Made by a program: the position numbers and the translations under genes. DNA of 63,032 bases, counting the filler, from Lenisia limosa (lineage: Eukaryota > Protista > Breviatea): NCBI GenBank assembly GCA_001655205.1. It is 17 parts of 17 records of this genome, joined end to end, with 100 filler letters (N's around TTAATTAATTAA, not from the genome) between each part and the next. Parts side by side here need not be neighbours in the genome. Positions count along the whole stretch, not along the records: positions 25,672 to 36,076 come from LPNZ01010038.1; 16 more parts are not named here. One strand, 5' to 3'. This document shows positions 280-37,395 of the stretch, piece after piece (within the stretch, counting starts at the first letter, position 1; each line of letters opens with the position of its first letter). The notes beneath the pieces are model-generated. The model made no database searches, was not told where the DNA came from, and saw only the letters and a program-made list of their open reading frames with translations.

Positions 280-1315
280 ACTGGACTGACGCGGAGTAAT
301 GTGTCACTCCATGCCGGGCTATGTCTTTTGACCGAGGCTGGTGACTCAGCGTTCTGCGAAAACGAAAAACGTGGGGGGGGGGATAATTTATATCTATGCA
401 ACAGTTTTCTATTAACTGTTAAATGTTTTCTGTCTACTTCCTACTTCCCATAATGTAACTCGCAATAAATAGTCACTCACTACACCCATGATATTGACAC
501 TATAGTGGATCCTGAGGAAGCAGATTCGCATACTTGGCAACCCAGTATCTCAAGAGTGGTTTCCAGCGCTGACGGCATGACCAGATACCATCTTGGCCTT
601 ATTGACTTGCTACAAGTGGGGGGGGGGGGACGCGGNNNNNNNNNNNNNNNNNNNNNNNNNNNNNNNNNNNNNNNNNNNNNNNNNNNNNNNNNNNNNNNNN
701 NNNNNNNNNNNNGTATTGCTAGCCAACAGAATTGTTTTTGGCTTCTTTTTTTATTTGTTTCATAATTTCCAATTTTACTCCCCTAGCGATATACGGTACA
801 AAAGAAGGTGGAAAGATTCCTCAAGAAGGGCCTTTTACGGGAGGTTTGCAGCCATATTGTCAATATTGCTTAATCTATCGATAATATTCTGTATTTTTGG
901 GGGTTATTGCTCTTTGTTGCTACATTTCTCTGGTTATTGCTCTTTGTTGTTACATTTCTCTGGTTATTGCTCTTTGTTGTTACATTTCTCTGGTTTATGC
1001 TCTTTGTTACTACATTTCTCTGGTTATTGCTCTTTGTTGCTACATTTCTCAGCTTTTACTTCCATGCATCTTTTGATAATAATGCCAAAATACAATTCAT
1101 TTCTATTATTCTGATCTTTCTTCGTTCTCCATCCAGCATTCCAATCTATTCAAGCCTTGCCGCCTCGTCACTACCAACAATCATTTATATAACACCCCAT
1201 CCATCGTTTACATGACCCGCAGGCCGAAACAACATCAACTTCACCGGACCAATACGCTGCCCGATTTCTGCGGTTTGTGGACGAGGTCGTGGTGGAAGCC
1301 GAGGCAACAGTGTAG
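280..1315 (+). CDS. Phosphatidylinositol phosphate kinase (PIP5K/PIPK family), C-terminal exons; 5' part outside window
   Basis: Exons 280-370, 506-615, 787-843 and 1223-1315 join in frame via GT-AG introns to ...YHLGLIDLLQ|RYTVQKKVERFLKKGLLRE|AETTSTSPDQYAARFLRFVDEVV...*. This matches the PIPK motifs YxxGIIDxLQxY, KKxExxxK and SxxxPxxYAxRF. Confidence 0.85.
616..786 (+). mobile_element. Family B copy apparently forming a whole intron of the PIP-kinase gene
   Basis: GT-G-run-GGGACGCGG (B head), an N run, then GCCAACAGAATTG...TTTCATAATTTCCAATTTTACTCCCCTAG. The flanking exons join in frame (LQ|RY). Confidence 0.7.
902..1050. repeat. 30-bp intronic minisatellite, 5 copies
   Basis: Unit GGTTATTGCTCTTTGTTGCTACATTTCTCT, within the last PIPK intron. 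Confidence 0.9.
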
Positions 1316-1600
1316 ATTGCTGTCGGATTTGTCATTCGGCCGCAGTTGGATATGGTTTCTTATTCTGATTTTATGGTTAATGTAACATTATATTTAATTT
1401 TTCAATTTGAGGGTGACCAAAAAGGGGGGGTGCAGCTTGTTTGAGATTGTATGGTATTGTTGTTCGAGCTCGCCCTTGTTCCATTTTGAAAACAACCTCA
1501 TATCTAATAACGGGTAAATCGCAGGGGAAACGATGAATCAAGGAAGAGAAATAAGACAAGAAACAAAGCCCTATCTTAATGAGGGCTTCTCACCATAATA

Positions 1601-4600
1601 CTAAAACACAGTGTCGAAATCGAAGGTGTTCGAAGATGCTGCGGTTGGCTCAGTAAACTCAATGTCTCCAAAAGCATCGTTCTGAGACTGGGTGAGGAGG
1701 ACATCGAAATGTGTAACACTCTAATCTTCTCTCCAGAAAGACAATATGATATGATAATATCTTTTGTAATAAGTAATTCACATCATATAACCCACCAAAA
1801 CCCTAAGATATACTTCCCCCCCCCCCTAATGACAAACACAAATCNNNNNNNNNNNNNNNNNNNNNNNNNNNNNNNNNNNNNNNCCATCATTATTCATCCC
1901 TAATGAAATACTCCCCATTCACCTGTTCAGCTTTCTGCTGGTTGCAATTGGGAGAGTCCGAAGAAGTGGGGGCCTGATGTATGAGACGGAAGAAGAGTGC
2001 AATATATGGACAAGGAAGAATTTCACAGTAAAGACGTACTTATGTCACACAATGAATAAAGAGAAGAAAAAGGAGCAAATGTCAGCAGCAATTTCAATCA
2101 AAGATAAACAAAAAAAAAAAAGAATAAACCTGCAAAAAGCAAACCAGCAAATCTCCAAAGCCAGAAAACATGTCAACGCTCGATTTGGAAACTTCCTCTT
2201 TCGTCCCGAAGATATCCAGGTCCTGTGTGGCATAATCAAACGCAACGGGCGCGGCCGGGGTGGATGGCGAAAAGGTGATGTCTTCAAAGAGGTTGTTCGG
2301 ATCTTTTGGTGCGGCGGCAACAACAGGGGGTTCTGGGGGGCTCATTACTGCGGGCTGGGCGAAAACAGTAAATGTATCCAGGGGTCCCGGGGCGATAGCC
2401 TGGCTCGGAATTTGTGTTTCAGCTGGGGTTTGGAAGGGGTCTGAGGATTGCTGGGTGAAAATATCGGCAGAGTTGGGTGGGGGGATGGATGAAGATTGGG
2501 GATGGAAGGAAGGAGGGTGGGAGGGGACTGAAAACGGAGCCTTCACATCGACTTCGGAGAATATATTCCTGGGGGTCTGAGGTTTCGGCACAAACAAATC
2601 TGCGGATGGCTCGGAAAAAAGGTTCGTTACTGGGTCCGGATGTGCCTCTTTTTGAGCTGAAAACAGGTCCGAACCTTCGGCCTGACCAATGGGGGGTGTG
2701 ATGGCTGATGATGGCGATTCTGGCTTGGTGAGTGAGAAACAGCTGAAAGCTCCGGGGGATTCTGGGGTAATAGAGGAGGAAACATTGTCACTCAGAGCTG
2801 TGGGGAAAAGGTCCTGTTTCTCCTCCGTTTTGGCTGTTTTTGGAGCGAAAAGGTCGTTGAAAGAGTCTTTGGAGAGATCTGGTGATCCAGTGGGCACTAC
2901 GGGCGAGGAAAACAAATCCTCGTCACTAGCCACCTCGGGAGCCGCCGAGGTTGACTCCTTTTCAGGAAGGGGAAAGAAGGAGTTCAGATCCGCGGCCGAA
3001 ACCTCCAGCCCGACTTGCTCAGCTGACGTTGAGGGCTCCGTGGCGGCTTGGTTTAATGAGTTGGAACTGCCATTTTGGGTGGCGGTTTGGCTGGTGTCGG
3101 TAATGTCAGAACTGTGGATCGTGTCGGAACTTTGAGGCTGGCTGAAGAGGGCAACCGGTGTGGCCTCGGTGGAGGATGAGAACATGTCTGTTGTTGACTG
3201 CTCGGATGAAGACTTCGGAACTGCATCGTAGTCAAAATCTTCCGGACTGAGGTCGGAATGCTTCACGCAAGGCTTGGCAAAATCAGTGAAATCATCACTT
3301 GGTGATGATGAGGGTTGGGCGAGTGACTGCGTGGTGTCCGTCTTTGCGAAGAGGTCATCAAACGATCCGATCGGAGTGTCCGAAAGGGAGGCTGAGAAAA
3401 ACATGTTGGGTGACTCGATGGAGGATAAGACCTCCTGCGAAGCGAAAAGACCGTCAAAGCTAGTTTCGGGACTGGTGGGAGAGAAAAGGTCCTTTTTACC
3501 ACCTTGAGGCTGCGTAGCGAAGGGATCCTCAGAGTGAGCGGGTGGAGCGGATTGGGATGAGATTTCGCCTTTGTTAATATCTTCTTGGGAGGAAGCAGGC
3601 TCGGATTGAATAGGGCTGGGGGGGTCAAAATGAATTTCCTGAATAGTATCTCAAATATCAATGTTCCGACTCGCACGTTTATAGAGATATTATTATAGTA
3701 CAATTGATACATACAAATATAAGTAAATTAATATGTTAGATTTCACAAGGGTTATACATCAGAATCCAAGCCCCTCAAACACTATTGAATCATCATTAAT
3801 GTCTTCAACAGGAGCATCACCGCTGGAGGTCTGAAACATCAAGGCTAATAAAGTATGTACTGTATGCGAAACGACAAAAAATAAAAACAATTCTCATATG
3901 ATATTTCTGGTTGGAAAACCAATACGTGAAATATATACAACCATGCCTACAGGAACAGACGCAAATGAACCGTCAGTAACGTTGTCAGAAATACCGGAGC
4001 CGAATACGGCAAAAGGATCAGTGTGATTGTCAAGGGGTGTGGGCTCGGACTGGGGTGTGGGTTTGGAAGGAACAAGGGTGGTTTTGAAGGCCGATGATGG
4101 CGAAGGGACTATCGGTATGTCAGCTGAGGAAGACGGACGTTCGGAGGATTGGACAGAGAACAGTTCGGAAGCCTTCGGAACTGTCGGTTCGGAAGTGAAT
4201 AAATCAGACTCAGGCGGCGACGATGAGGCTTTGTTTGCAGCTAATAGGAGGGTTACATTGAACTGAAAGGAATCTTCAGTATTTTTAGGCAAAAAGATAT
4301 CCGGAGATTTATTCAAACCTGAGGATGCAGGAGCTGCAGCTGTGGAGAGGGCTTCTTGTTTTGATTCTTCCACAGGTGAGGATGTTTCATCGTCTTCAAA
4401 AAGAGAAATATCTTGTTTCCGAGAGGAGAAGAGATCATCTTGTTTATCTTGAGAAGGGGAGAAGAGATCACCTTGTTTCTCTGGAGAGAATATATCATCT
4501 TCTTGCTGTTTCTCTGAAGAGAAGATGTCCTCCTGTTGATCTTGAGAAGGGGAGAAGAGATCACCTTGTTTCTCTGGAGAGAATATATCATCTTCTTGCT

Positions 4601-5840
4601 GTTTCTCAGTTGAGAAGATGTCCTCTTGTTGATCTTGGGAAGGAGAAAAAAGATCACCTTGTTTCTCTGTAGAGAACTTATCATCTTCTTGCTGTGTCTC
4701 TGTAGAGAAGAGATCACCTTGTTTCTCTGTAGAAGGGGAGAAGAAATCTTGTTGATCTTGAGAGGAAGGGAAGAGATCTTGCTGCTCTATTGAAGGGGGG
4801 ATGGCATCGGTAAAGGAAGTTTCATCAAATGGGCTTGCCTCCTTGCTAAACAAATCAGGCCCCTGATCAGCCTCTTTTACAGCGAAAACACCTGGCATTT
4901 CCTCTTGGGAGGCAGCAAATACGTCTTCGTGACTGGCGAATAAATCATGCGAATTTTTTTGCTGGAACAAATCAGCAGCATCATCACCCTCGGTTAACAA
5001 GTTGGAGTCCTTCGACGGCGAAGTGGAGCCGGAGTGGTAGTTGTTCGGGGCTGTGGAGAAGGGATCCCCGGAAGCATCGGGGGAGAACGGGTCAATATTC
5101 TCGTTGGAAGTGGAAAAGAAGTCTTGGTCCTTCTCGGGAACTGAGGAAAATGGATCTTGGGCGGGAGTGTCAGAAAAAGGGTCAATTTGGGGTGCGGGGC
5201 TGTCAGAAAAAGGGTCAACATTATCCACTTCCTCGGGAGTTTTGGACAGGCCGAATGTTGATTCCGGGGACCCGGCAGACTCCGGCGAGGCAAACTGCAG
5301 GTCCATGCTGGATGCGGATGGGATGTCGAGGTTTGACGCTCCAGCAGAGTCAACCGGCATGAGAATGGAGGTCAAGTCAAACGGCAGTGTCGAAGACGGC
5401 GGCGTGGGTGAGGAGGCTGGGAGTGGATCACTTTGCATGAGGTCAATTAGACAACTTTGATCTTGTGATCCAGTTTGGGGGGTAGAAATCGAGGGGAGCG
5501 CCTCTCCGAAGCCCGCAAAGGGGTTTTCGATATCCATCGGGTCAGCCTGGATGGATGGTGTTTCAATTTCAACGTTCTTCAAGGGGGATTCCAAAACAGT
5601 CACCTGTTGCTTGGGGGGCTCTTGAACGGATTTGGAACCTTCCTCTTTTGGAAGTTCCGTTTTAGGCATTGAAGGCACCTCCTGAATGGAAGGGACGCTT
5701 AATGGACTGGGTGTTGGCCGTGCCGGGAACTGGACTGGAACAAACGAGGGTGTTGGCGACCTTTGCGGCCTTTGCGTGCATGAATTGCGTCGTGCAGCTG
5801 GGGGGTGAGGGCGACATATTTTAATATTTGTACATATCAT
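1601..5840 (-). CDS. Very large acidic Ser/Pro-rich low-complexity protein with dozens of DPF/DLF/DIF/FxxF motifs (endocytic accessory/adaptor-binding-like); multi-exon
   Basis: ORFs 3894-5840 and 2094-3404 plus linking exons (about 3405-3620, 1915-1975, 1601-1710; stop TAG at 1601-1603). Repeated DPFS, DLFS, DIFS and DFF motifs in a disordered background. Confidence 0.75.
4400..4740 (-). repeat. 93-bp (31-aa) coding tandem repeat
   Basis: EKQGDLFSPSQDQQEDIFS(S/T)EKQQEDDIFSP, about 3 copies. Confidence 0.85.
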
Positions 5841-6049
5841 ATCTCATCATAAAAATAACTAAAAAAAGGCGCGAAGTCCTTCCTCGTATTTCTCCCATTT
5901 CACATCTCCACTTTATATAACCAAAATATGTTCTAGTGTGCCCTTCCTCCCACTACCCCCCTCATTTGACATGCCCTTCCTCCCACCAGCACCCCCCTCA
6001 CATAGTAAATGAATGATTACGTATCAAACATAGCCCACATACACACATT

Positions 6050-6505
6050 CATCAAACACCAAACCCACCAGCGTCTCTGAGGACAGAGCGAGTCGGCTGG
6101 TAAGGTACGAGGTTGGACAGGACAGCCTTGGCCTCGCTTGAGGGGATCGTCTCTGAGTAGACGTTCTCATTATTCCTGGAGGCGGCGGATAAACATTTCC
6201 ATTCTGACTGGGTGGGGAAAATGGAAAATAAATGAAACAAAAAAACACAAAACACCCACGGGTTTGAAAACAACAACAAATCCTTGGTCAACTTTCAGGT
6301 CAAAACACTATTAATTATATTTTGGGAGGGAGGGGGAAGTGTTAGCACAATATTTCCAATATTTAGGAACATCCTCCCAACAATCCCTCAAAGTTTCCTC
6401 TATACCCACATAAGGAACCCGCAGGATATGCAGCGATTGATGCTTTCAGGTGAGCAACAGCTACAATTCGGACAAGTGACCACTTTTGCGTTCCTGAGGA
6501 TATGA
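6050..6505 (-). CDS. Exons probably upstream of the DPF-rich gene, including a Cys-rich zinc-ribbon-like segment
   Basis: Acceptor ...ccccacccAG at 6208-6209 precedes ENVYSETIPSSEAKAVLSNLVPYQPTRSVLRD. 6410-6500 reads ILRNAKVVTCPNCSCCSPESINRCISCGF (CxxC...CxxC). Linkage to the DPF gene is inferred. Confidence 0.45.
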
Positions 6506-7257: not shown

Positions 7258-8043
7258 CAGCTTTTTACATCTCATCTTAATATCTCTTGTAAACGTGATG
7301 CTTTAGGATAATACCTTTTCTCAAAAACTCGGTATATTACTACCAGTGACAAGTACCAGTGTCGCACCCATAGTATCCCTTATTCCCCTTTCTTAAATCA
7401 AGCTATTTCACCGCTACTGATATCATTTTTCCAAGCTATTTCACCGCTACTGACATCCATTCAGTCGGTCGTCAACTCTGGGTATACAGCCTCCCACTCC
7501 AGACCTCAGAATCCGTGCACAACCATCAACTATCAACAACAGAGGTGGGAGGGGANNNNNNNNNNNNNNNNNNNNNNNNNNNNNNNNNNNNNNNNNNNNN
7601 NNNNNNNNNNNNNNNNNNNNNNNNNNNNNNNNNNNNNNNNNNNNNNNNNNNNNNNNNNNNNNNNNNNNNNNNNNNNNNNNNNNNNNNNNNNNNNNNNNNN
7701 NNNNNNNNNNNNNNNNNNNNNNNNNNNNNNNNNNNNNNNNNNNNNNNNNNNNNNNNNNNNNNNNNNNNNNNNNNNNNNNNNNNNNNNNNNNNNNNNNNNN
7801 NNNNNNNNNNNNNNNNNNNNNNNNNNNNNNNNNATTATTTACGGTCGCGACGTGGTATTATACATATAGTATATGAAGGGAAATAAAGAAAAAAATAATG
7901 CTAAGCATTGGGAAAAGAGGCCTATTCCTACCAAGTGAATCACTATGGCTGACAACCCAGAACAAAGATAATACTAATAACCCTCACCTTCAACTAGGGA
8001 AGTGAACCGCAATTTTTCCAGATATATTGCTAACACAGTTCAG

Positions 8044-9494
8044 ACTCCGGCTGGACCCCCCTTCATGCCGCCTCCGTTGCAGGCCATAAACGGACGTGTC
8101 TGGTGCTACTGGACAAGGGGCATCCCATCAACGCCATCGATATCACCGTAGGCTGTTTTGCTGGAAGGGTTCACTGAAAAATGTAACAGATATCAATGAT
8201 ATATGGAGATACTCCGATTGTATTGGCAGCGGAAATAAGGCGATCTAACTTATAGGGTCAAACCGCACTACACACCGCAAGTGCGAATGGAAGAGACAGC
8301 TTGACTGCCGCTTTACTCCAGCGAGGAGCCAGGCCGGATATCAAGGTGGGGGGTATGCGGATAATGTGGTATCAATATTTTGTCTTTTCTCACAAAAAAA
8401 ATAGTAAAACTGTCATATTATTTTCCTCGAAGCGTCCACTCAATGCAATCAGGATAATGAAGGAAAAACCCCCCTGCATCTTGGAGGTGAATGGGGGCAC
8501 CCTGTCCTCTCCCGTTCCCTCGTAGCCAAGGGCGCCAATGTCGATGGACTTGATAACAATGTTGGAGGAGTACACTGTTGATGACCTCGATAGTGCTTTG
8601 TTTTTTGGAGCAAGAGAAATAATATGATATATACATTAGAAACCTAGTGTTTATCATACAGTGTAAGCTCTCGAGGGCAGAACGTAATGCTTCTTTCCTA
8701 GTTTTGCCTTAATATTTTGGGCTTTTTTTGATCACATCCAATCCTGACTTCCTAGTCCTGCACTCCCCTGCTCCTCGCAGCCAAACTTCGCCACCCTGAC
8801 ACAGTCATTGCCCTCCTCAAACAGGTGAGCCAAATATACTGTAACCTCGTGGCTGACTTTTTTGTCCTTACATCGCTATTGTAGCCATCTGATACTCTAG
8901 TCGTATATTTTTATTGCTTAATACAGCATCTCAATCCGAAGCCTTACATTCCCATTCTCATGAGCAGGGTGCACAGACCAACATTCGAGATTCGACTGGC
9001 GCCACCGCTCTGCACTATGCGGCGCAGTCGTGTGTGGCGGCAGCATGTCGTANNNNNNNNNNNNNNNNNNNNNNNNNNNNNNNNNNNNNNNNNNNNNNNN
9101 NNNNNNNNNNNNNNNNNNNNNNNNNNNNNNNNNNNNNNNNNNNNNNNNNNNNNNNNNNNNGAATGCTATGTTCAATACAAATGTGGAGAATTGAGAATTG
9201 TGTACAAGGAGGTTACGATGCAAATAATTGATGAAAATACGGTGGCCGTGGGCAGTCTTGACAGATTTTTCTGAGGAGAAACTGTTTCAATCGGTCAAAA
9301 CTTCTCTCGGTCAAATATCATTCTCATCAAGACCCTCTGGCCAGGCACAAGGCTTGGTTTTATCATCCTTATCAAGAGCTGTGTCCAGGCTCTGAGACTT
9401 GACCGCTGCAGTTGCGCTTGTGAAGGCTGGTTCGGATGTCAGTCTCAAGGACTCTGAAGGCGCTACTGCCCTCCATCTCGCGGCATTGAGGGGT
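8044..9494 (+). CDS. Ankyrin-repeat protein (multi-exon, partial)
   Basis: Exons translate to GWTPLHAASVAGH, GQTALHTASANG..LLQRGARPDIK, CTPLLLAAKLRH, GAQTNIRDSTGATALHYAA and GSDVSLKDSEGATALHLAALRG, which are canonical ankyrin consensus segments. Confidence 0.87.
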
Positions 9495-25424: not shown

Positions 25425-26526
25425 TTTTTTCTCATTCTCACTGGGCTTTGATTGTTTTGTCATCAACCCTCATGTGTTAACAACCAACATGGTTGATTTT
25501 GTTTCATAAATTTTCCAATTTTTCTCACTCTTCCCCCGCCCCCTTCAGAATACACACTCACTCACACACAANNNNNNNNNNNNNNNNNNNNNNNNNNNNN
25601 NNNNNNNNNNNNNNNTTAATTAATTAANNNNNNNNNNNNNNNNNNNNNNNNNNNNNNNNNNNNNNNNNNNNTTTTTGGGTGGTCACCTATATACATATTG
25701 ATATATGTATCTGACAATAAATTTTTTTGTTGTATCATACTTATTTTGACAATATCAAGTAATATTGAAAAAATTAGAAAAAAAAAGGGCCGATGTTCAC
25801 GGCCAGGTTATGTTCAAGGTCAGGTTAGTGTTCACGGTCAGGTGACGTACCTTATATATTTGACGGCCACCCTTACCTCTCTGGAAAATTAGCACAACCC
25901 TGTTCCTAGCTTAACGTGAATAGGTGCTACAGTTCTTCAAAACGTCCAAGAAGTTGACCACTATTCCCAAGATTAACACCGTGGACGTCATCACAGATTT
26001 CGCACGGTTTTTCTTCAGAAATCATCATATGATTGAGACTGTATGGGGGGGGAGATCTGTGTATTGTTTGAAAGCGGGTATGTATGTACATAGTATAGAT
26101 ATGAAAGATGATTATGTAGTTATCAATATTTACGATAATATTTTTCAATACAGCCTTTGATGTCTGTCTGCTCTTCTAACTCACTGGCTCCTTAATCTGT
26201 GGCATAAGACGGATTAGGAGGGCCTACCTGGNNNNNNNNNNNNNNNNNNNNNNNNNNNNNNNNNNNNNNNNNNNNNNNNNNNNNNNNNNNNNNNNNNNNN
26301 NNNNNNNNNNNNNNNNNNNNNNNNNNNNNNNNNNNAATATATGATAGTATAGTATATTTCATATAAATTCATATGTAGTATTAAATGATATGATATAATC
26401 TTGGGGAACCAATAAACACAGGCTCCGCTTGGCTAAACCGGTAAAATAACGAGGATTATTCGACATTTAGTCTTTTTGTTTCACAGTAGACATTCTCGAG
26501 TTTATTCAATATTATAATAGCTCATT

Positions 26527-26610
26527 ATTTTGCCTCTCTTATTTTGCCTATTATTGTGCCTATTATTTTGCCTCTCTTATTTTGCCTATCCTTTTGCCTA
26601 TTCTTTTGCC
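26527..26610. repeat. About 12-bp tandem repeat
   Basis: (TTATTTTGCCTA/CTC)n. Confidence 0.8.
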
Positions 26611-27854
26611 TACTCTATTAAACTATCTAACCGCAACCAGTCCACCAGCGTTTTCGATTTACTAGAGAACTACCCTTTGTCGAATGCTCAGTCGCGCGTT
26701 GACCAGAGTGATTTCTGGAACNNNNNNNNNNNNNNNNNNNNNNNNNNNNNNNNNNNNNNNNNNNNNNNNNNNNNNNNNNNNNNNNNNNNNNNNNNNNNNN
26801 NNNNNNNNNNNNNNNNNNNNNNNNNNNNNNNNNNNNNNNNNNNNNNNNNNNNNNNNNNNNNNNNNNNNNNNNNNNNNNNNNNNNNNNNNNNNNNNNNNNN
26901 NNNNNNNNNNNNNNNNNNNNNNNNNNNNNNNNNNNNNNNNNNNNNNNNNNNNNNNNNNNNNNNNNNAACTATCATTTTCCACACAGGAATTTGATACCGC
27001 ATGATAATTGACTGACAAGTCTCAATGATACTCCGACACACTCGGGATGAACCCTCGTGTTATCTTCGGTCATATGATCAAATCACTAGTGGATATGGGT
27101 TAAAATATACAGTCAAATGATGATATTTCTTTCTGTCTCTGAAGCTGTTTAAACCATTTTAAATTTCAAAAAGGGATTTTGAAGCTGATTTACCTTGTTT
27201 TCTGATTTTGCTAAATAATGGGTAGAAAAAGTTCAGTTCAATATAACCAAACACCAGGGGTGTACAACTCCCGTCCTTCCCGCTATTCTGTGGGATGGTC
27301 AGTTCGGCTCTGCGGCGCCAGAAGAACGCGCACGTTTTTTCACAGGTGAGAGAGGGGAGTCTAAGGGGGTTCATGTTGTGTATTGATTTTGGGCTGGTGT
27401 GAGGGTAGAAAATGTAAGGTCAATTTTAGTAACTACAGACGTTTTTTAAATATTTCATCCCATTATTGTGAGAAACTTTTGCTTTTACCCCCTCGTGACT
27501 GTTTTAGCTGAAACAGGTGATTTCAGATCAGCAGAAGGATCTCTGTGAGAATGAACACACTCAATTCTGTCTGTCTCTTCTGAAGGATTCGGGTGGGTTA
27601 CGAAACCATATTATATCACGTTATATATACATGTATAATAAATAAATATACTATAATGAATATTCGATATTCAAAGCACATTGAATGAATATGATTTTAT
27701 ATTATAATTGGTATATTACATACTAGTTTATTATCATTGTATATATGATATTTTTACACAGTATACTTCATGTCATAGAGATAATACACATGTAGTGCAT
27801 CTATTAACGATAATACATATAGTATGATAATCTACTCTATAATTAAAATATTTT

Positions 27855-28470
27855 TATTTCTCAGGCGAGATGCACAGTTTCAATGAGATCAGTTTCCGCT
27901 CCTTTGCAAAGTTCTTTGCACCGCCCGTCACAAAGTCGCGGAAAAGAAGGCAAAAATCGAAGTGTGTCGTTGAAGCTATTGACGCACTCAAAATGGTGGC
28001 ACATTGGACGGTTGGAGGAGGGTGAAGGAAGTAAAAGGAAATTTCGATGAAGAACATAAGCGGAGAGGTATCAATTACTACCCGAGGAGAGGGGAGTGGA
28101 AGTTAAGTGGTTTGGTCAACTTTTGCTTGTTTTTGACGTGAGGTGGTCATAATTGGGGCTTCTCTTCTCGAGATTTCTCGAACGTCTATGTTATTGCCCT
28201 CATTGTTGACGCTCAAAAAAGGGGGTGGTTGATTCGCTACTTTTCCGTGTGCAATTGAAGTACTGTATATTTATCACATCTCCTAACGGCGAGCTCGTCT
28301 ACTCGTGAGCGGACTTGATTGTTAAAATTCGTGCGATCCCAGCGTGCTTTCGCTGAAACAAAAACAAAATTGTAATTGATTTTTTCAGCCTGAGGTTAGG
28401 TCCCATGCCATTATCGCAATGAAGCGTCACGCTCTTTTCGTGCAACAATACAAGGCTTCTGATAACCATG
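27855..28470 (-). CDS. Small multi-exon gene, unknown
   Basis: Open segments MVIRSLVLLHEKSVTLHCDNG, KARWDRTNFNNQVRSRVDEL and CHHFECVNSFNDTLRFLPSFPRLCDGRCKELC. Confidence 0.33.
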
Positions 28471-28689
28471 GTGGGTGTGGGTGTTGTTTTGTTTCACCAA
28501 TGCCTATTACGGGTGGGTTTCTTCCCAACAACTTTTCTTAGTCATGGTTTCGCTTCGGTTCAACAAGAAAAACATTAAGATGAATGAAGAAACTCAATCT
28601 GGCCTCTTAGGCTGTTATCTGTAAAATAGGGCAAATAAAACTGGTTTTCAATTTATGATAAGATATGTTTTGTATCTTCTGATTTCTCA

Positions 28690-30810
28690 CCCTTCAGCCA
28701 ACCCAGGCCTTTTAGAGAGTCTCATTATGAGTTCGGTAACTAATGCTGGTGGGCTGAGTGAGGATACAGTGAGTGCAATATGTCCTGATACGGATATTGA
28801 GTATCTCATAATCATTATCTTTTCATCATCATCATTATCATCATCATTATTACCATCATCATCATCATCATCACCATTACCATCAACAACAACAACAACA
28901 ACATCATCATCATCATCATTACCATTATCATCATTACCATCATCATCGCTAATCTAACTCGCCAGAGGATATGGTCTTTGAGATTCATGATTTGAGTCCG
29001 TACACCGAGGAGAGTATCAAGGAATTGTGGGTTTTGGAATATATATCACACCGTTCAATCTGTGAATTTTCTCTATCTATGAAAACAAGCCAGATGAACA
29101 TTTTCCTTGATAAAAAAAGTTGAGTATCACAGTAGATTTGCTATGTGATATCTGTCAAGACTTATCCTGGTCACTGTATATTTAGGAGAATGGTGAAGAT
29201 TTGTAGTTTTTCGGGAGGTTTTTAGAATGTGTGGGGGTGACGATAGTCTCAAGGAGTTATGAAAATGGGGAGGCGGGGTGGTAGAATAGGGGGTTTATTT
29301 CAGTGTGTCAAGGAATAACTTTTGTTCGAAAAAAGACTGAATGTCTCGATAAATCCTTGAAAAACTATCGATATTTTCCCGAATTTTTTCGAACCGAAGT
29401 AAAGCCCTTGTTGAGGAATATGCAACATCTTATAGTATTTATTATAAGGCCACTAAAGGGTAGATTTTATTATCTTTTTAGCATTTTGGCGATCCTTGGT
29501 ACCCTATCAACTATTGAGTGCAAAATGCTAGAGGCTGCGGGGGCCTTGAGTTGTCATGCTTTGGGTGAGAGTGGAGTAAAACGAGGGAAATTCGATGAAT
29601 ATTGACCTAACCCTCCCCNNNNNNNNNNNNNNNNNNNNNNNNNNNNNNNNNNNNNNNNNNNNNNNNNNNNNNNNNNNNNNNNNNNNNNNCCTCTCACTGG
29701 TTTATATCTGCTTAGTACTTTGTGTTATCTCAGAGCTTTGTTGATTCAGAAACAGTTTTTTACTGGTTATTGTGCCCAGATAGATTTTATCTAACCTCTG
29801 CAGGTACGCTGGAGTAATGGGATGCGGTGCTGCAGAAGCGGCTGGCCTGGGCTTTGTTTGTTTTTTAACCATCGTGTGTTGTCAGCCAACAGAGTTGATT
29901 CTGGGCTTTTTTTTTTGTTTCATAAATTTTCCAATTTTACCCCCCCCCCNNNNNNNNNNNNNNNNNNNNNNNNNNNNNNNNNNNNNNNNNNNNNNNNNNN
30001 NNNNNNNNNNNNNNNNNNNNNNNNNNNNNNNNNNNNNNNNNNNNNNNNNNNNNNNNNNNNNNNNNNNNNNNNNNNNNNNNACAAATTCCCTGCTCTTTTA
30101 GACGCGCATTTGACTGAAGACGTGATTGCCCATGTTATTGAACATGATATTAGCAAATGTGAGGAGGGGGATTTCTTGTTCAATCTTTGTTTTTTTGGCT
30201 TTATACCACCGTTTTTCTTTGATCCACCCCCCTTTTTTTTTTCTCTCTTTCTTTGCCTCTCTCTCTTTTCTGTTTTTATCTTTATTGAGCGTGATTCTGT
30301 CTAATTGAGTATTCATTTACAGAAACAAGTAGTAGAAGAAGACCAAGCAGTATCTTACGATAAAGCGATAAAGCGAAAAAGTTAGTTGACATTTTCTAAA
30401 TCATTCTGAATCTGAGTGTCCTAATAACAGCCGAATTAGGCATGAATAGGAACATGGGCTAAAAACAACAACAACATCATTAACAACATGTCCCTTCCTT
30501 CGACCATTTTTTTAAAAAAACCTCTACTCAAATTTTGAATTGTGTTCAAGCCGAGAAGGGGGGGGGGGATCTCCAAAACTCGCTTCTTACTCTCTCTCCA
30601 TCAACAGCACGAATTGGGGTGACAAACTCTACGAGTAGTTCAAAGAGCTCGGCTGATTGGCAGAGGAACAGGTACCATGGCTTGCAGAACTTCTATGTTG
30701 TCAAAATAATAATTCTTGTGCTGAAGACGAAGCGGGTTACAAATCATCAGTCGTGGGTACTTTCCCGCAGTGAGGGTGAGGCCACGACAGCACCTCTGAG
30801 CTGTAGTTAA
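28690..30810 (+). CDS. Multi-exon gene of unknown function
   Basis: Exons such as EDMVFEIHDLSPYTEESIKEL, KFPALLDAHLTEDVIAHVIEHDISKCEE and KQVVEEDQAVSYDKAIKRK, with GT/AG borders. Confidence 0.4.
28820..28948. repeat. (CAT)n/(CAA)n microsatellite
   Basis: Direct reading; it produces a spurious poly-Ser/Thr ORF. Confidence 0.85.
29320..29408. mobile_element. Family A1 MITE
   Basis: GTTCGAAAAAAGACTGAATGTCTCGATAAATCC...TATCGATATT...TTCGAACCGAAGTAAAGCCC. Confidence 0.75.
29804..29949 (+). mobile_element. Family B candidate introner, most complete copy (starts at GT donor, ends in poly-C before an N run)
   Basis: cag|GTACGCTGGAGTAATGGGATGCGGTGCTGCAGAAGCGGCTGGCCTGGGCTTTG...GTGTTGTCAGCCAACAGAGTTGATTCTGGGCTTTTT..GTTTCATAAATTTTCCAATTTTACCCCCCCCC. 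Confidence 0.85.
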
Positions 30811-31296
30811 ACGACGACGAGTTCTAGTTCATTGCACATTCAAAATCGAATAGTAACAAACTAGACTACATGCTGCTTCTTGAGCATGAAGTAGAAAGTG
30901 TTGTATTCGGTGAACGCACCGAAGTCAATCCACTAACATTTTTAATTTATCCTCTTTGTAGTTTAATGACCTTCCAATTAAGTCGGCTGAGGGCACCAAC
31001 TGGATCTTTCATCCTAAATGTGACCCCCGAATCCTTTGGCCATGAATTACTATAACTACTTGATAAATAATTTTGTTACTTCATATTGTAGAATCAAAAG
31101 TCAGCTTTACGATAATTCCTGCAATGCTGCAACCACATTGGCAATACATGACCCTAGGCTTGCTGGAGAGCTTTTGCTCAACACTGAAGAAGTAATAACA
31201 ATTTTACTATTTTAACATGAGCATATCCACGCTCTGGATTTTTGTTAGGAAGAGATGATAAACTGAAGTAACTATGCAAGGAATTGATTCAAAAGT

Positions 31297-31530
31297 CTAA
31301 ATTTTAAAGTTGACCGAGATTGGCTTATTAGTGTCGCCAGGATCGAAATCTTCGTCACCCTCACCCTCGGAGTCAGTTTTGCTCAAATTCGTATCAGAGT
31401 TGCAAAAAGCTTCATCATCAGTCGTGACAGCCTCATCAACAGCTGCTAACAAAACCTTGAGTGAGTGTGAAGATTTTGGTGTGACTGTATGCAAAATGGA
31501 ATTCGCACCGCCGAGTTCCTGATAAATACG
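31297..31530 (-). CDS. Probable terminal exon, acidic tail
   Basis: ORF ...SLKVLLAAVDEAVTTDDEAFCNSDTNLSKTDSEGEGDEDFDPGD...*. Confidence 0.35.
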   Translation of the reverse strand, partial: RIYQELGGANSILHTVTPKSSHSLKVLLAAVDEAVTTDDEAFCNSDTNLSKTDSEGEGDEDFDPGDTNKPISVNFKI

Positions 31531-31720
31531 ATAACAGGAACAGGGGCTGACCTCCCAACAGTGTATCTATCTACGAATCCATCAAGCAGAATGACTTTGT
31601 CTGCCTTTTTCTTCTGCTTATGATAGTGATAAACTTCCCTGACCTAACTTTTCGTTTATGTTTTGAAAAAAAAATATTAAAAATCTGCATGCTGTTTAAA
31701 ATACCGATGTTATATTTCAC

Positions 31721-32125
31721 TATCACACCGTCCATAGATCTGTGAATTTTCCTCTATCTGTGAATTTATTTGAGGTATTCGAAAAAATTTGCTAAAAATA
31801 TGACATTAACAAAGAAAATTGTCGTAACACTCTTGTTGCTAACAAAAATGACAAAAACTTTTATTTGTTGATGACAACATTTTTATTTTGGCGAGATTNN
31901 NNNNNNNNNNNNNNNNNNNNNNNNNNNNNNNNNNNNNNNNNNNNNNNNNNNNNNNNNNNNNNNTCGTACATGTTCTTTGGTTGTTTTTAATTGAAGTAAA
32001 TTCTGAAGATGATCCTCAAAAAATGCAATGAATTAACTTATATATACTGTAATACTCAACCTATTCTATCAAGTAAATGTTCATTTGGCTTGTTTTCACA
32101 GATAGAGGAAAATTCACAGATAGGT
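31721..32125. mobile_element. About 400-bp MITE-like element (family G)
   Basis: ATCTGTGAATTTTCCTCTATCTGTGAA at about 31738 is inverted as TTCACAGATAGAGGAAAATTCACAGAT at about 32095. A further left-arm copy lies at 29043-29104. Confidence 0.65.
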
Positions 32126-32479
32126 GACCACACATAACCGTACCCACTTTCATAAAAAGGTCAATTTTTTAAAGAAAGTCAACAATTTCTGTTATGGAAA
32201 ACCACAATGTTTTCGGATAACAGTTATACGCTTTCATAAAATGCATTAGACATAATTAATTGAGGTAATTTAAGGTATTAGAAGATTATAGACCGTTTGC
32301 CTTGGTTTTTTGCGATGCTTCTCTTAATACAGTCAACAAAACTTAGAAAACACCATACGTTTTATCATTTGATTACGAGCTTCATCTTTTCCAATGCTTT
32401 TTTGCCCTTTTCAATTCTAAACAGTGAAGAATATGTGATGATACCAACTGTCTTGTCGTGCAATTTCATATTTCTTCTT

Positions 32480-32776
32480 TTCCAAGAGGCGTTTTGACCA
32501 GTGGTCTTCTGTATGAGGTACAATTGAGACCCTCTTTCCTTTACCAGGCTCAAAAGCAAGATTGTCATCTTTTCCAATGACTGGATTACCTTGCCAAGGA
32601 AGTTGTTCAGGGTGCTCAGTGTAATGGTCCATTTCAGCTTCAGTCAATTCATCTCGTAAGTCGGCAATTCTGGTCCATGCATATTTGGATTCAAGAGTAG
32701 TAGATGAACAACTCTGAGCAATTTCAATTTCCTGAATAAGTTCGGGAGTGTTCAGCACACAGGAGTAGACGGCCGT
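32480..32776 (-). CDS. Exon of unknown protein
   Basis: Open frame PELIQEIEIAQSC...WTRIADLRDELTEAEMDHYTEHPEQLPWQGNPVIG with normal protein composition. Confidence 0.4.
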
Positions 32777-33045
32777 NNNNNNNNNNNNNNNNNNNNNNNN
32801 NNNNNNNNNNNNNNNNNNNNNNNNNNNNNNNNNNNNNNNNNNNNNNNNNNNNNNNNNNNNNNNNNNNNNNNNNNNNNNNNNNNNNNNNNNNNNNNNNNNN
32901 NNNNNNNNNNNNNNNNNNNNNNNNNNNNNNNNNNNNNNNNNNNNNNNNNNNNNNNNNNNNNNNNNNNNNNNNNNNNNNNNNNNNNNNNNNNNNNNNNNNN
33001 NNNNNNNNNNNNNNNNNNNNNNNNNNNNNNNNNNNNNNNNNNNNN

Positions 33046-33640
33046 TTTTATTAATGATGTTTTCATAGCACCAAAAGTGACAAGGTCCAATGGCTGTGTA
33101 CATTGATATGTGTGCGACGGAAGGAGAAACAGCAGAATTTTATGTTGCTGAATAGTTTCCAGCATAATTGCAGAATATCGAGAAGTATGTCCATTAGTAA
33201 TGAAGAGTGTCCAAACATCTTTGGCCAATCCAAGCCTTTTCCTATCTTCTTCAATTTTTAAGATAAAAGTGCCAATGACATATTCATTCATCGAATCAAC
33301 ATTCTAGATAGTCAATCTATCAAATCACGTAGCAAACCTTCCATCCATTTGGTGCTTTGATCATAATAGCTCCATACTCTTCCAATATTTCATTTTCAAA
33401 TTTAGAGGTCTTTTGCCCACCACATTGAAGATATCTAAATCATCAATGTTTACCCTAATTCTCTTTTATTAGTTCCTCATGTTCTTTTAAAGCTTGGTCA
33501 TGCTCCTTAAGAGCTATCTCAAGTGCAATATCGAAATCTACAAAACTGCTATTTTCAAATCTTTTAATCTCACCTAGGGGATCCTGTGATGTGAGATTGA
33601 TGCCTTCTAATTTGAGTTTAGTTCCTCTATGATTTGAATT
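33046..33640 (-). pseudogene. Degenerate pogo/Tc1-mariner-superfamily (DDE_1) transposase remnant
   Basis: FITNGHTSRY...ILLFLLPSHTYQCTQPLDLVTFGAMKTSL matches the DDE_1 consensus LxxDGHxSH...LxxLPxHTTHxLQPLD..F..LK. Upstream KAPNGW motif is frameshifted, stops are present, and the catalytic D reads N. Confidence 0.78.
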
Positions 33641-33664
33641 TGACAGATCTCATTCTGTTCCTTT

Positions 33665-33865
33665 TTGGATTGATTCTTTTTTCTTCTTTTTTTGGATTCT
33701 TTTTCTCTTTTTTGGATGATTGTTTTTTGGATTCTTTTTCTCTTTTTTGGATGATTGTTTTTTGGATTCTTTTTCTCTATTTTGGATGATTGTTTTTTGG
33801 ATGATTGTTTTTTGGATGATTGTTTTTTGTATGATTGTTTTTTGGATGATGATTGTTTTTTGGAG
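33665..33865. repeat. 15-bp/about 30-bp tandem repeats
   Basis: (TTTTTGGATGATTGT)n and (TTTTTTGGATTCTTTTTTCTC)n. Confidence 0.8.
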
Positions 33866-34289
33866 GGGTGGGAGGGGTGTTTGATTACCTATGGATTGAA
33901 AGCAGCAGGTTCTGCGAACAAAGACCAGATGTGTTGGTTTGTCTATTACATATGTGCGTATGTCTATTTGTGGGTGTGATATGGGTTGGTGAATAATGTG
34001 GTGTATGTGTAGGAGGTGGGGGTAATTGAGCATCTGGTTTGGTTAAACAGCAACTATTTCATTCTCCGTTTTTACTGTTAAGATGAAGCATTCTCTCTCC
34101 TCTCTCATGTGCTCAAAGTTTGTTGAGGGTAAATTATAGTAGAGCCAGATTTCCTTCATTCCACCTTGGGAAGCGGAGGGTGTATTTTGGGTGTATTTTG
34201 TAAAAATTGAGTAAAAAGAGTTGATCTGTCTCATTAAATTTTCCTTTTTACCCTACACACACACCCACATAACTTTCCTTCGTTTTACC

Positions 34290-34420
34290 TATGCGGTGCT
34301 GCAGAAGAGACTGGCTTGGGCTTTGTTTGTTTTGTTTATCAACACTCGTGTGGTGTCCGCCAACAGAGTTGATTTTGGGCTTCTTTTTTGTTACAAATTA
34401 CCTTCGTTTATTCCCCCCAA
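34290..34420 (+). repeat. Family B near-full copy
   Basis: ATGCGGTGCTGCAGAAGAGACTGGCTTGGGCTTTGTTTG...GCCAACAGAGTTGATTTTGGGCTTC. Confidence 0.8.
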
Positions 34421-34444
34421 CTCTCGGTCTAACGTTGTTTTCAG

Positions 34445-35930
34445 CTCATTTCAACTCAATCGGCTGCCGATGTCATTTCCACCCTGGCTACTGTAGGGCG
34501 GCGGAGGGGATTTTACCTTGAAAATAAATATTGTTCATTGAAATTTCCTTCGTTTCTCTACCCCTCCCCAACATTAGTAACATTAGTATCACACCAGCTA
34601 ACGTGGGGGGTTTAGATCGAAAAAGAGCTTGTAGAAGCCTTGCTCGCGCGCCACCGCAGCAACTGCGAATCGGAGGGGACGGAAGTTGACGATTTCGATG
34701 GCGATCTGCACTTCAGTCGTTTCGGTTTTGGCTCTTTCCTCCAGTCGGGGGGGTGTGGGTGGTATTGCTATAAGTAGGGCTTCCCTACGGTCCGAAAAAG
34801 ACAATTTAAATATCGATATTTATCGAGGATTTATCGAGAGTTTCGGTCTTTTTTGGGGCTATAGGGAACCCCTAGGTATAGGTATGCTGGGAGGCACGCA
34901 GACAACTGTGCGCAGAGTTGTCAGGCAAATATTTGGGTGAATTAGTGTAATACTATCATTCAGTGTTTCTTATAAGCGTGATGGTGTGNNNNNNNNNNNN
35001 NNNNNNNNNNNNNNNNNNNNNNNNNNNNNNNNNNNNNNNNNNNNNNNNNNNNNNNNNNNNNNNNNNNNNNNNNNNNNNNNNNNNNNNNNTAAGCAGCTTA
35101 AATCAAGCAATTGTTTTTCTGGAGTGATGGGATGCGGTACTGCGAAAGCGACTGGCCCAGGTTTTGTTTTGTGGTGACGTTGTCAGCCAAAAAAGTTGAT
35201 TTAGGCTGTGTTTCATCAATCAGCTTCTGGCAACAGGCGGTTGNNNNNNNNNNNNNNNNNNNNNNNNNNNNNNNNNNNNNNNNNNNNNNNNNNNNNNNNN
35301 NNNNNNNNNNNNNNNNNNNNNNNNNAAGTCCGGATTTGGTATGTGGTTTCTATATTTGGCATGTGGTGCTAATTCATTTCCATTTTTGGAAAGTGGTGCT
35401 TGAAGATTTTTTTTTTATTTGGTGTGTTGTTCAAACAACAGATTAAAAACAACCACCAATCGTCACCTTTCCCCCAGGATTTGAGGAGGAAAGCTTGCAT
35501 GACGTTGTGTCGAAGGTCGTCAACAAGGCAACTGCTAGTCTGCTTCAGGACGACAGTTACGAAAGCCTGCAATTACGAAGCAGACAAGTGGACATTTCAA
35601 GTGGGAGGAGGGGGGGGGGGGTAAAGTATACATGTAGATGTTTCTGAAACAAACGAAATAACAGTCGAGGATTTCTTGAGGTTTATCTCTACTAATGAGG
35701 ATTATCAAGTATAATCGAGGATTTATTGAGTATTTTGACTATTTTAAGTATTTAGCTATCAGTCAGCTGCCTACAGACACCAAAATATGACCCCCTCCCC
35801 CAGAGCACCTTGTACTCGAGTTCTTCGGGACGCACGCAAGTGAAATTCCGATGGATATTCTTGATTCGTCCATCCACGCCGCCTGTGAGAAAATCCAGGA
35901 CCAGGGACTCCCCGGCTGCTCCTCTGCTGT
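34445..35930 (+). CDS. Multi-exon gene of unknown function
   Basis: Exons IEKELVEALLARHRSNCESEG, GFEEESLHDVVSKVVNKATASLLQDD and EHLVLEFFGTHASEIPMDILDSSIHAACEKI, with poly-C AG acceptors and GT-G-run donors. Confidence 0.5.
34776..34872. mobile_element. Family A2 MITE (variant TIR GGGCTTCCCTACGGTCC)
   Basis: TA|GGGCTTCCCTACGGTCCGAAAAAGAC...AATATCGATATTTATCGAGGATTTATCGAG...GTCTTTTTTGGGGCTATAGGGAACCCC|TA. Related copies near 55698-55790, 61590-61665 and 62449-62510. Confidence 0.78.
35115..35215 (+). repeat. Family B copy
   Basis: CTGGAGTGATGGGATGCGGTACTGCGAAAGCGACTGGCCCAGG...GTCAGCCAAAAAAGTTGATTTAGGC. Confidence 0.75.
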
Positions 35931-37395
35931 GGGGGGTTGTATTTATTATATACTAGCTAGATGTGTATGATATAAGGAAAGCTGGACCCTTCTTTGTTTT
36001 GTTTTTTTACTATATTCTCTCTATAGAGACGCAGAAAGCTCTGTGCACATAGTTCTTAGGCAATTGTTTGGGTGAANNNNNNNNNNNNNNNNNNNNNNNN
36101 NNNNNNNNNNNNNNNNNNNNTTAATTAATTAANNNNNNNNNNNNNNNNNNNNNNNNNNNNNNNNNNNNNNNNNNNNGCCGAAATTTGAAGGCATTTATGG
36201 AAATCCCAAGTCGATGAGTGATTTATGAACCACATACCTTGGGAATAGTACCGTTTTTTACAGCGACTGAGAAGTCTAAGGAAGCTTTTAGCCTTCTTGA
36301 GGAGAGAGAAGGCTGACGCTGGTTTGCTGGGAGGGGGGTAAGAAAGTGGAAATTTAATGAAAATGCCCCCTCACCCTAATCATAACCCAAAAAAAGGAGA
36401 TCAGATAATCATATACTACGAATGTACCATGTGATCATCTGATCTAATCACCCCGCCCCCTACCCCAGTCCGCAGCCTCAACAGCAGCTTCCAAGGCCCG
36501 ATCCGCCTTAAGCACAAAAGTGGCGTCAGCGTTGCCAATTGTTGCGTTGCGTAAATGAAGCACATCAGCGCGACTGTGGAGTGAGGCGTGTGTTTGATAG
36601 TCAAATTGATTTATGATAATATGAAATCAGAAAAAAAACAATAGGTTATATTTCTATTTCATCACAAAAACAAATAAAATAACAAAAGGTGATGAATTAA
36701 CAAAAGATGGTGGGAAAGGTGTTGTAATCAACCCATTTTTACATAACTCTTTTCTAATTTCCAAGGAAAATCCATTCAGCGAGAGAATGTCTCCATCTTG
36801 TCGATGTGTCAAAAGTAACATCGACTTGGCAAAAAATACCCACCCCATCATCATTTAAGACTTTTACCTAACTGGCTTTTAAACCCTTTGTAAGAGGATT
36901 CCAGCCCTTTCTAAACCGCCTGCCCACCAAGTAAAAGACATTCCACTATTTTGAAACATATTGTAAAAGGTGTCTTGAACGGGCAACTCAGACTTTACGG
37001 TCGATTATGTTCTCAACCGAGACACTTCTCCTACAACGCTGCTCGTCTCATCCGAACCCTCAATACTAATGGAAATATCTTGCATTCCTCAAGAAATTAA
37101 CGATATCGTTCATCTTCAAAATCAAGTTTGCATTTATGACACCCATCGAACAAAACTGAGAGCGCTTCTCTGAAGCAACCTCACTAGCCTCATAGACTAG
37201 GGGATCTCCACTTGAGACCTAGTCCTACTATTGAGCCACTTATAATCTGTTCTCCTTTGAGGACGTTATCAATACTTACGATAATGTTATTCTATAAAGC
37301 CTTTGATGTCTGCAATTCTAACTCTCTGGCACCTCCTGGATCCTGGGTTATTATACAGGGGCTATTGTCCTTATTCATGAATCTAATCCTTGAAG

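Follow-up and report, generated by a model that had tools for sequence, protein, structure and literature searches.

The piece of the Lenisia limosa genome analysed in this work contains, in the middle of a gene, a repeat of about 150 nucleotides (family B) that begins with GT and ends with AG. This raises the question of whether the repeat creates introns or settles in introns that already exist. Large-scale, episodic intron gain has its best-supported source in introners, whose mechanisms of insertion and splice-site recruitment are still debated. The window (the whole stretch of DNA analysed, 63,032 nucleotides in 17 joined parts) includes the locus on the piece at 25672-36076 (LPNZ01010038.1), a gap-rich eukaryotic scaffold of approximately 37% G+C with a multi-exon gene on the + strand. 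Family B behaves as an introner family in the sense of Worden 2009, Huff 2016 and Gozashti 2022 and is, with good confidence, a non-autonomous mobile element built as an intron. The family has a defined anatomy, one copy (copy A) makes up a whole intron, the copies are in the sense orientation only, and the tail is the acceptor in most of them. The original prediction, a splice-site-bearing repeat forming introns in unrelated genes, was borne out by the whole-intron copy A, by 13/15 acceptors and by 18/18 sense copies, but most of the sampled copies were composite and their own GTAYG was not the donor.

Family B copies and other repeats in the window

Two ORFs of the window were used as exact keys to obtain gap-free contigs of the same genome from ENA assembly ERZ3820729 (L003, 6,639 nt; L004, 9,440 nt, the latter extending 6.7 kb past the piece). 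Every window segment was 100% identical to these contigs. The repeat was found where it had been predicted, and the piece harboured three family B copies, all on the + strand (Table 1). Family B core motifs occurred twice in the piece vs. 0.00 expected from dinucleotide shuffles.

Table 1. Family B copies, adjoining exons and related introns (positions along the window unless a contig is named)
Feature	Position	Strand	Remarks
Family B copy A, full-length	29804..29949	+	whole 151-nt intron; last 5 nt (TCCAG) in the following N gap
Exon 5' of copy A	29734..29803	+	ends ...SFVDSETVFYWLLCPDRFYLTSA, CAG before the element GT
Exon 3' of copy A, visible part	30081..30158	+	first 79 nt inside gap 29950-30080
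Family B copy B	34291..34419	+	without first 18 nt; profile positions 19-146, E=3e-33
Family B copy C	35117..35223	+	tail shortened to ...GTTTCATCAATCAG; profile positions 4-127, E=6e-28
Exon after copy C, start	35224..35243	+	runs through N gap to ~35338; L004r 1813-1889
Neighbouring intron	35339..35477	+	ends in short B-like C-run tail CACCTTTCCCCCAG
Sibling intron, inverted-repeat ends	35601..35803	+	G-run head GTGGGAGGAGG-G10-TAAAG; C-run tail CCCCCTCCCCCAG

Copy A matched the family profile from position 2 to 151 (nhmmer, E=4e-45), and its distances from head to donor and from tail to acceptor were both 0. On the contig it spans L003r 4295-4445, from GTACGC to C10-TCCAG. The 5' junction reads ...CTGCAG/GTACGC (slashes mark junctions), while the 3' end consists of TTTTAC, C10 and TCCAG, reaches 5 nt into the gap and is followed directly by an in-frame exon. 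This exon (L003r 4446-4601) starts right behind the element AG, reads VGQDFAALLTTMPHLVAPLANVLLNPGKFPALLDAHLTEDVIAHVIEHDISK and opens VGQDFAALLTTMPHLVAPLANVLL...DISK; once copy A is removed, it is in phase with the upstream exon (...FYLTSA). The chain from the exon before copy A onward extends over approximately 330 codons with no stop. As the gap-free contig contains the donor GT, the C-run with TCCAG and the in-phase exon, copy A is a complete 151-nt intron formed by the element alone. The end of copy A was invisible in the original prediction because its C-run enters the N gap (stated as 131 N at 29950-30080; true length 84 nt in L003). The N gaps at 29950-30080 and 35244-35325 adjoin homopolymer runs, have wrong stated sizes and conceal 79 coding nt of one exon as well as the central part of a second. 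The family B repeat and the homopolymer runs account for the fragmentation of the assembly and for the exon sequence lost in the gaps. Family B was seen in three independent assemblies (the window scaffold, the ENA SPAdes contigs and the Logan contigs).

Copy B is fused to the truncated tail of another element (junction TTTTACCT/ATGCGG). It occupies the 3' end of a 3.25-kb intron, which contains transposon remnants as well. The first AG after the C-run of copy B is the acceptor at 34443-34444, 25 nt downstream, and the exon that follows (34445-34492) is in phase. Copy C has TTTTT in place of GTAYG, and a composite intron of 424 nt has the last AG of this copy as acceptor; the next exon (FWQQAVEHNPELTKYLPVSEQKSGF), partly in an N gap, is in phase with both neighbours.

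Other repeats were also observed. The 3.25-kb intron harbours a pogo-like DDE_1 transposase remnant on the - strand (32417-33291, Pfam E=0.005), with possible element ends at 31736-31749 and 33637-33650 and short inverted ends AGATCTGTGAATTT. The remnant is multi-copy (depth ~495 vs. 28), and similar copies were present in polyA RNA contigs. This transposase was considered as the autonomous partner of family B and rejected, as the termini AGATCTGTGAATTT are unrelated to those of B. A MITE of ~380 nt (31738-32121), with perfect 27-nt inverted repeats ATCTGTGAATTTTCCTCTATCTGTGAA and a bin depth of ~16,000, probably derives from the pogo-like element, and an inverted arm related to it was found at 29067-29103. 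An open frame of 89 codons with an acidic stretch (31300-31566, - strand) showed ~4x single-copy depth; the 3-nt indels in its other copies suggest a coding fragment of another repeated element in the big intron. Intronic simple repeats (28807-28960 and 33650-33860) are made of CAT/CAA triplets and of a 15-nt unit, TTGGATGATTGTTTT, which draws unrelated T-rich RNA contigs from runs of other organisms.

A very abundant repeat, ATCGATATTTATCGAGGATTTATCGAGAGTTTCGGTC (bin depth ~78,000), is located at 34775-34860 and 35703-35735, with an inverted copy at 29329-29364; in many other contigs it adjoins family B tails in either orientation. Another family of ~150 nt (GTATGCTGGGAGGCACGCAGA ... GGCAAAT.TTTGGGTGAA ... 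TATAAGCGTGATGGTGTGGACGGCTTCGGCCAGATACA) was present in the window (34879-34988 and 36020-36076) and on the contigs (L003 5860-6000; L004 1420-1530 and 6740-6860; L006 1-45). Its first nine bases, GTATGCTGG, match the family B head, a hint that the two families share their mobilisation or a donor module. Long inverted termini (TTCATCGAAATTTCCTTCGTTTTAC and a C-run) characterise a further family, located at 28011-28070 and 29576-29618 in the window and at 1830-1870 and 3815-3852 in L006. Its forward form ends introns, its inverted form (GT..GGAG.GTAAAA.GA.GGAAATTCGATGAA) starts introns, and GTAAAAC itself seems to serve as donor in one case.

Splice sites, orientation and abundance

One frame of the ORF that runs through the repeat had no protein homologues; the second frame matched three short ORFs, and these led to further contigs of the same assembly (L005-L007). 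A family B profile was built from 7 copies and run with nhmmer (cut-off E<0.05) on five contigs (37.6 kb), three of which had been picked because they carry family B. The search gave 19 matches, all on one strand and none antisense; 16 significant matches, distributed over the five contigs, lay in other genes outside the copies of the piece. The strand of family B was the coding strand in all 18 matches with a readable host gene. As had been claimed, the host genes are unrelated: 18/19 matches were in introns of four unrelated genes with dissimilar flanking exons, namely a NO VEIN/sacsin-like HATPase protein, a Grx5-like glutaredoxin with a long Ser/Pro-rich extension, a protein reading like the VPS13 C-terminal region and a small membrane protein with an acidic tail. 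A full-length copy in L005 (GT...AG) had no recognisable coding exons around it. Host exon chains were assembled by hand and checked by phase, and none had an internal stop.

The host gene in the piece and its continuation (L003/L004) encode the NO VEIN/sacsin-like HATPase protein and are extremely dense in introns. In the annotated parts, exons between introns are just 45-156 nt long and there are approximately 10 introns per kb of coding sequence, suggesting massive intron gain. Single exons of this gene gave nothing useful in Pfam, and the ESM Atlas was uninformative for one exon. A V-ATPase c subunit was ~70% identical to proteins from many eukaryotic groups, the best named match being Pygsuia (74%). 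A degenerate pattern of the family B core gave only two chance matches in the JGI metagenomes, both in GC-rich bacterial genes; head and tail patterns had no match in IMG/VR viral contigs, and Rfam and tRNA scans of the element had none either.

The claim that the element ends at the AG used before the next exon was confirmed: in 13 of the 15 tail-bearing copies (copy C included), the first AG after the C-run was a phase-consistent acceptor. In one of the two exceptions the tail lies 66 nt upstream of its acceptor; the other is a copy that has lost its C-run, close to the 5' end of a 301-nt intron. These boundaries were also checked against homologues. A 36-residue exon of the HATPase domain retrieved 560 relatives, and the spliced protein was 51% identical to P0136 over 172 aa, with all five exon junctions of the stretch free of gaps. 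Three of those introns have B sequence at the 3' end: L004r 7667-8237 and 8315-8543 end directly in a B tail, and the acceptor of 8904-9155 is 31 nt past the B match. The ungapped alignment indicates that the three B-carrying introns must be removed exactly at the inferred boundaries. Three introns of the window gene that consist of unique sequence had no C-run tail; the module therefore marks introns derived from elements and is not a splicing signal used throughout the organism.

The corresponding claim for the 5' end, that the element starts at a cag/GT donor, held for copy A (and possibly for the L005 copy) but not in general. Five other family B heads were located 33-444 nt inside longer introns, and their own GTAYG was not the donor. 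Such internal heads usually lie directly behind the truncated tail of another element, with the internal AG/GT junction deleted, as in L006 (TTTTACCCTC/ACGCTGGAG). Several short introns, such as L004r 5971-6064 and L006 3367-3469, join a G-rich head to the 3' half of B. Most sampled copies are the 3' part of composite introns and not whole introns, and these composite introns, using only the 3' module of B, are the main departure from the picture first proposed.

Abundance was analysed in the DNA contigs of run X1, which contain 91% of the words of the window. When aligned to positions 29700-35699 at 80% likeness, 16,523 of the 195,906 contigs matched. Summed depth over B reached 664,503 at position 29841, vs. 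27-30 (about 28) in single-copy contigs, and was similar in the head and the tail. Summed depth is not a copy number, so only an order of magnitude was taken from it, which suggests thousands to ~10^4 copies of family B. At 29841, A is the base in most other copies, in agreement with the consensus first proposed. Approximately 6,000 of the aligned contigs were at least 95% identical to the stretch (some of them matching its other repeats), suggesting that many copies are young. In many X1 contigs, B tails were joined to B heads or to a second repeat family in either orientation.

The RNA runs searched for the host gene did not contain it, and the polyA metatranscriptome of the same study (X2) had no coverage of the host exons. 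X2 contains repeat-carrying contigs, which say nothing decisive on splicing. RNA runs reached via a related protein matched only the T-rich tandem repeat at 33670-33750.

Termini, mode of spread and rival explanations

In copy A, the CTGGAG that follows GTACG is the exact inverted repeat of the terminal CTCCAG (6 nt). Other B copies keep CTGG/CCAG, the inverted repeat within B being short (4-6 nt). The B tail recurs in inverted form at the start of other introns, where GTGGGAGG-G8-TAAAATGATG aligns with CTGGAGG-G8-TAAAATTGG (the reverse complement of the tail), and the head of the sibling intron in Table 1 aligns with the reverse complement of family B tails. Among the 35 annotated introns, the first 25 nt had a G-run in 13 and a C-run in none, and the last 25 nt had a C-run in 15 and a G-run in one; such G/C-runs are low-complexity sequence. 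The inverted tail at the start of other introns, together with the polarised G/C-run ends, favours a TIR-type, MITE-like DNA element. This favours in turn a terminus that would act as acceptor when forward and as donor when inverted, with G for C at the first base. Transposition of family B would then be DNA-based and MITE-like, with CTGGAG...CTCCAG as termini. A SINE was rejected, given that there is no tRNA or Rfam relation, the tail is a C-run followed by AG and all copies are sense.

An introner could also spread through RNA, the route proposed for fungal introner-like elements: the excised intron would reverse-splice into a transcript, and reverse transcription and recombination would follow. 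We consider this route unlikely for family B, although several features agree with it: the orientation is strictly sense, the unit is a whole intron, 3' ends are intact while 5' truncation is variable, and no clear TSD was seen (the two whole copies with both flanks each read CAG/GT...CAG/, indistinguishable from the splice consensus). Moreover, the inverted termini CTGGAG...CTCCAG leave GTAYG outside, which suggests that what moves is the intron itself. However, RNA copying does not predict the tail recurring inverted at the 5' ends of other introns, and the tail-to-head stacking and the adjacency to another repeat in both orientations, seen in many contigs, also argue against it. Nor is the fold of the element more stable than that of shuffled sequences (MFE -32.9 kcal/mol vs. 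a shuffle mean of -37.1, z = +1.16).

Alternatively, family B could be an ordinary high-copy MITE- or SINE-like repeat located in pre-existing introns, having created none. The acceptor link and the sense bias would then reflect survivorship, where only insertions without a harmful cryptic acceptor would persist. The composite introns are what this explanation has in its favour: most sampled copies lie within longer introns holding other repeat families, and the five internal heads are where those of an intron-colonising repeat are expected. The L005 copy, full-length and without recognisable coding exons around it, and the presence of repeat-bearing contigs in polyA RNA also agree with it. 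By contrast, copy A fills its intron precisely from donor to acceptor and leaves no room for other sequence, and a repeat inserted at random into introns of 100-570 nt would seldom have its last AG exactly at the acceptor, as seen in 13/15 copies. The absence of antisense copies (0 of 19) also speaks against survivorship in old introns, and the short exons and high intron density suggest massive gain. Colonisation of old introns as a general explanation is therefore weakened and looks improbable; it remains a candidate for the composite cases. A last explanation, an assembly artefact or paralogous introns from recently duplicated gene segments, has only the fragmentary state of the scaffold in its favour and can be dismissed, as the flanking exons are unrelated in sequence and function, which refutes duplication, and the repeat is present in three independent assemblies.

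From this evidence we infer that the B copies arose by insertion, that is, by intron gain, and not by colonisation of old introns. Family B would be a mobile element of ~150 nt built as an intron, with a GTAYG 5' splice site, an internal spacer and a 3' module. The 3' module would comprise TTTTAC followed by 6-13 C, a putative branch point and pyrimidine tract, and CAG as the 3' splice site. After sense insertion into an exon, the spliceosome would remove exactly the element, and the gene would survive and gain an intron, with copy A as the example. Copies may also insert at or beside introns already present, many of which derive from elements. In such cases B, with its strong 3' module, would supply the acceptor of a composite intron and its GT would become internal, the junction with the previous element often being deleted.

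More tentatively, the terminal module (TTTTAC, C-run and CAG) may be shared by several repeat families. In forward orientation it would provide branch point, pyrimidine tract and acceptor, and when inverted a G-rich donor (GTGGGAGG-Gn-TAAAAT), so that one inverted-repeat terminus would give both splice sites. New copies would stack preferentially on the ends of element-derived introns, and these families might have made more than half of the introns of the host. If this possibility were true, with ~10^4 copies of B alone, the expansion would be among the largest known for introners.

Comparison with known introners

Family B is a very abundant and apparently young population (many contigs are 95-99% identical) with a clear anatomy. 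If a census and RNA data confirm this reading, the family would show a transposon terminus doubling as both splice sites as well as introner stacking, and would add a lineage with extreme intron density.

The fungal introner-like elements of van der Burgt et al. 2012 reportedly lack TIRs and are said to be predicted to fold stably. Family B resembles them in its whole-intron unit, sense orientation and lack of a clear TSD, and in the rapid decay of its non-functional parts, through which older copies resemble ordinary introns. Unlike them, family B bears short inverted termini, and its fold is no more stable than that of shuffled sequences.

For the introners of Micromonas pusilla and Aureococcus anophagefferens, PMC9860276 summarises the MITE model of Huff, Zilberman and Roy 2016, in which the element brings one splice site and recruits the other from a TSD of 3-9 bp. 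Both these introners and family B are short, non-autonomous, DNA-transposon-like elements associated with intron creation at genome scale. However, family B appears to carry both splice sites, and no locus-specific TSD was seen in its two whole copies.

Gozashti et al. 2022 catalogued 548 introner families in 175 genomes, with strong enrichment in aquatic organisms, including many TARA Oceans genomes (PMC9860276). Some of these families have TIRs but no TSD (for example, family 4 of the Acanthoeca sp. TARA MAG), and some carry both splice sites (PMC9860276). The element sequence of B was not found in the full-text literature searched or in the supplements of PMC9860276, which come without consensus sequences, and family B may already be catalogued. 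The phenomenon is known already, and family B fits the known introner kind, the class being assigned by description and not by sequence. Like the introners of marine protists (PMC9860276), it is high-copy and non-autonomous, forms similar introns in unrelated genes, has its 3' end (and in copy A also its 5' end) at intron-exon boundaries, appears to carry both splice sites and shares its genome with several other families. Its TIR-like termini liken it, again by description rather than by sequence, to the class with TIRs and without TSD (PMC9860276). Family B differs from marine-protist introners in that its head is often not the donor, and the ~10^4 copies suggested by depth exceed the 1,000-3,500 per genome in the counts taken from PMC9860276.
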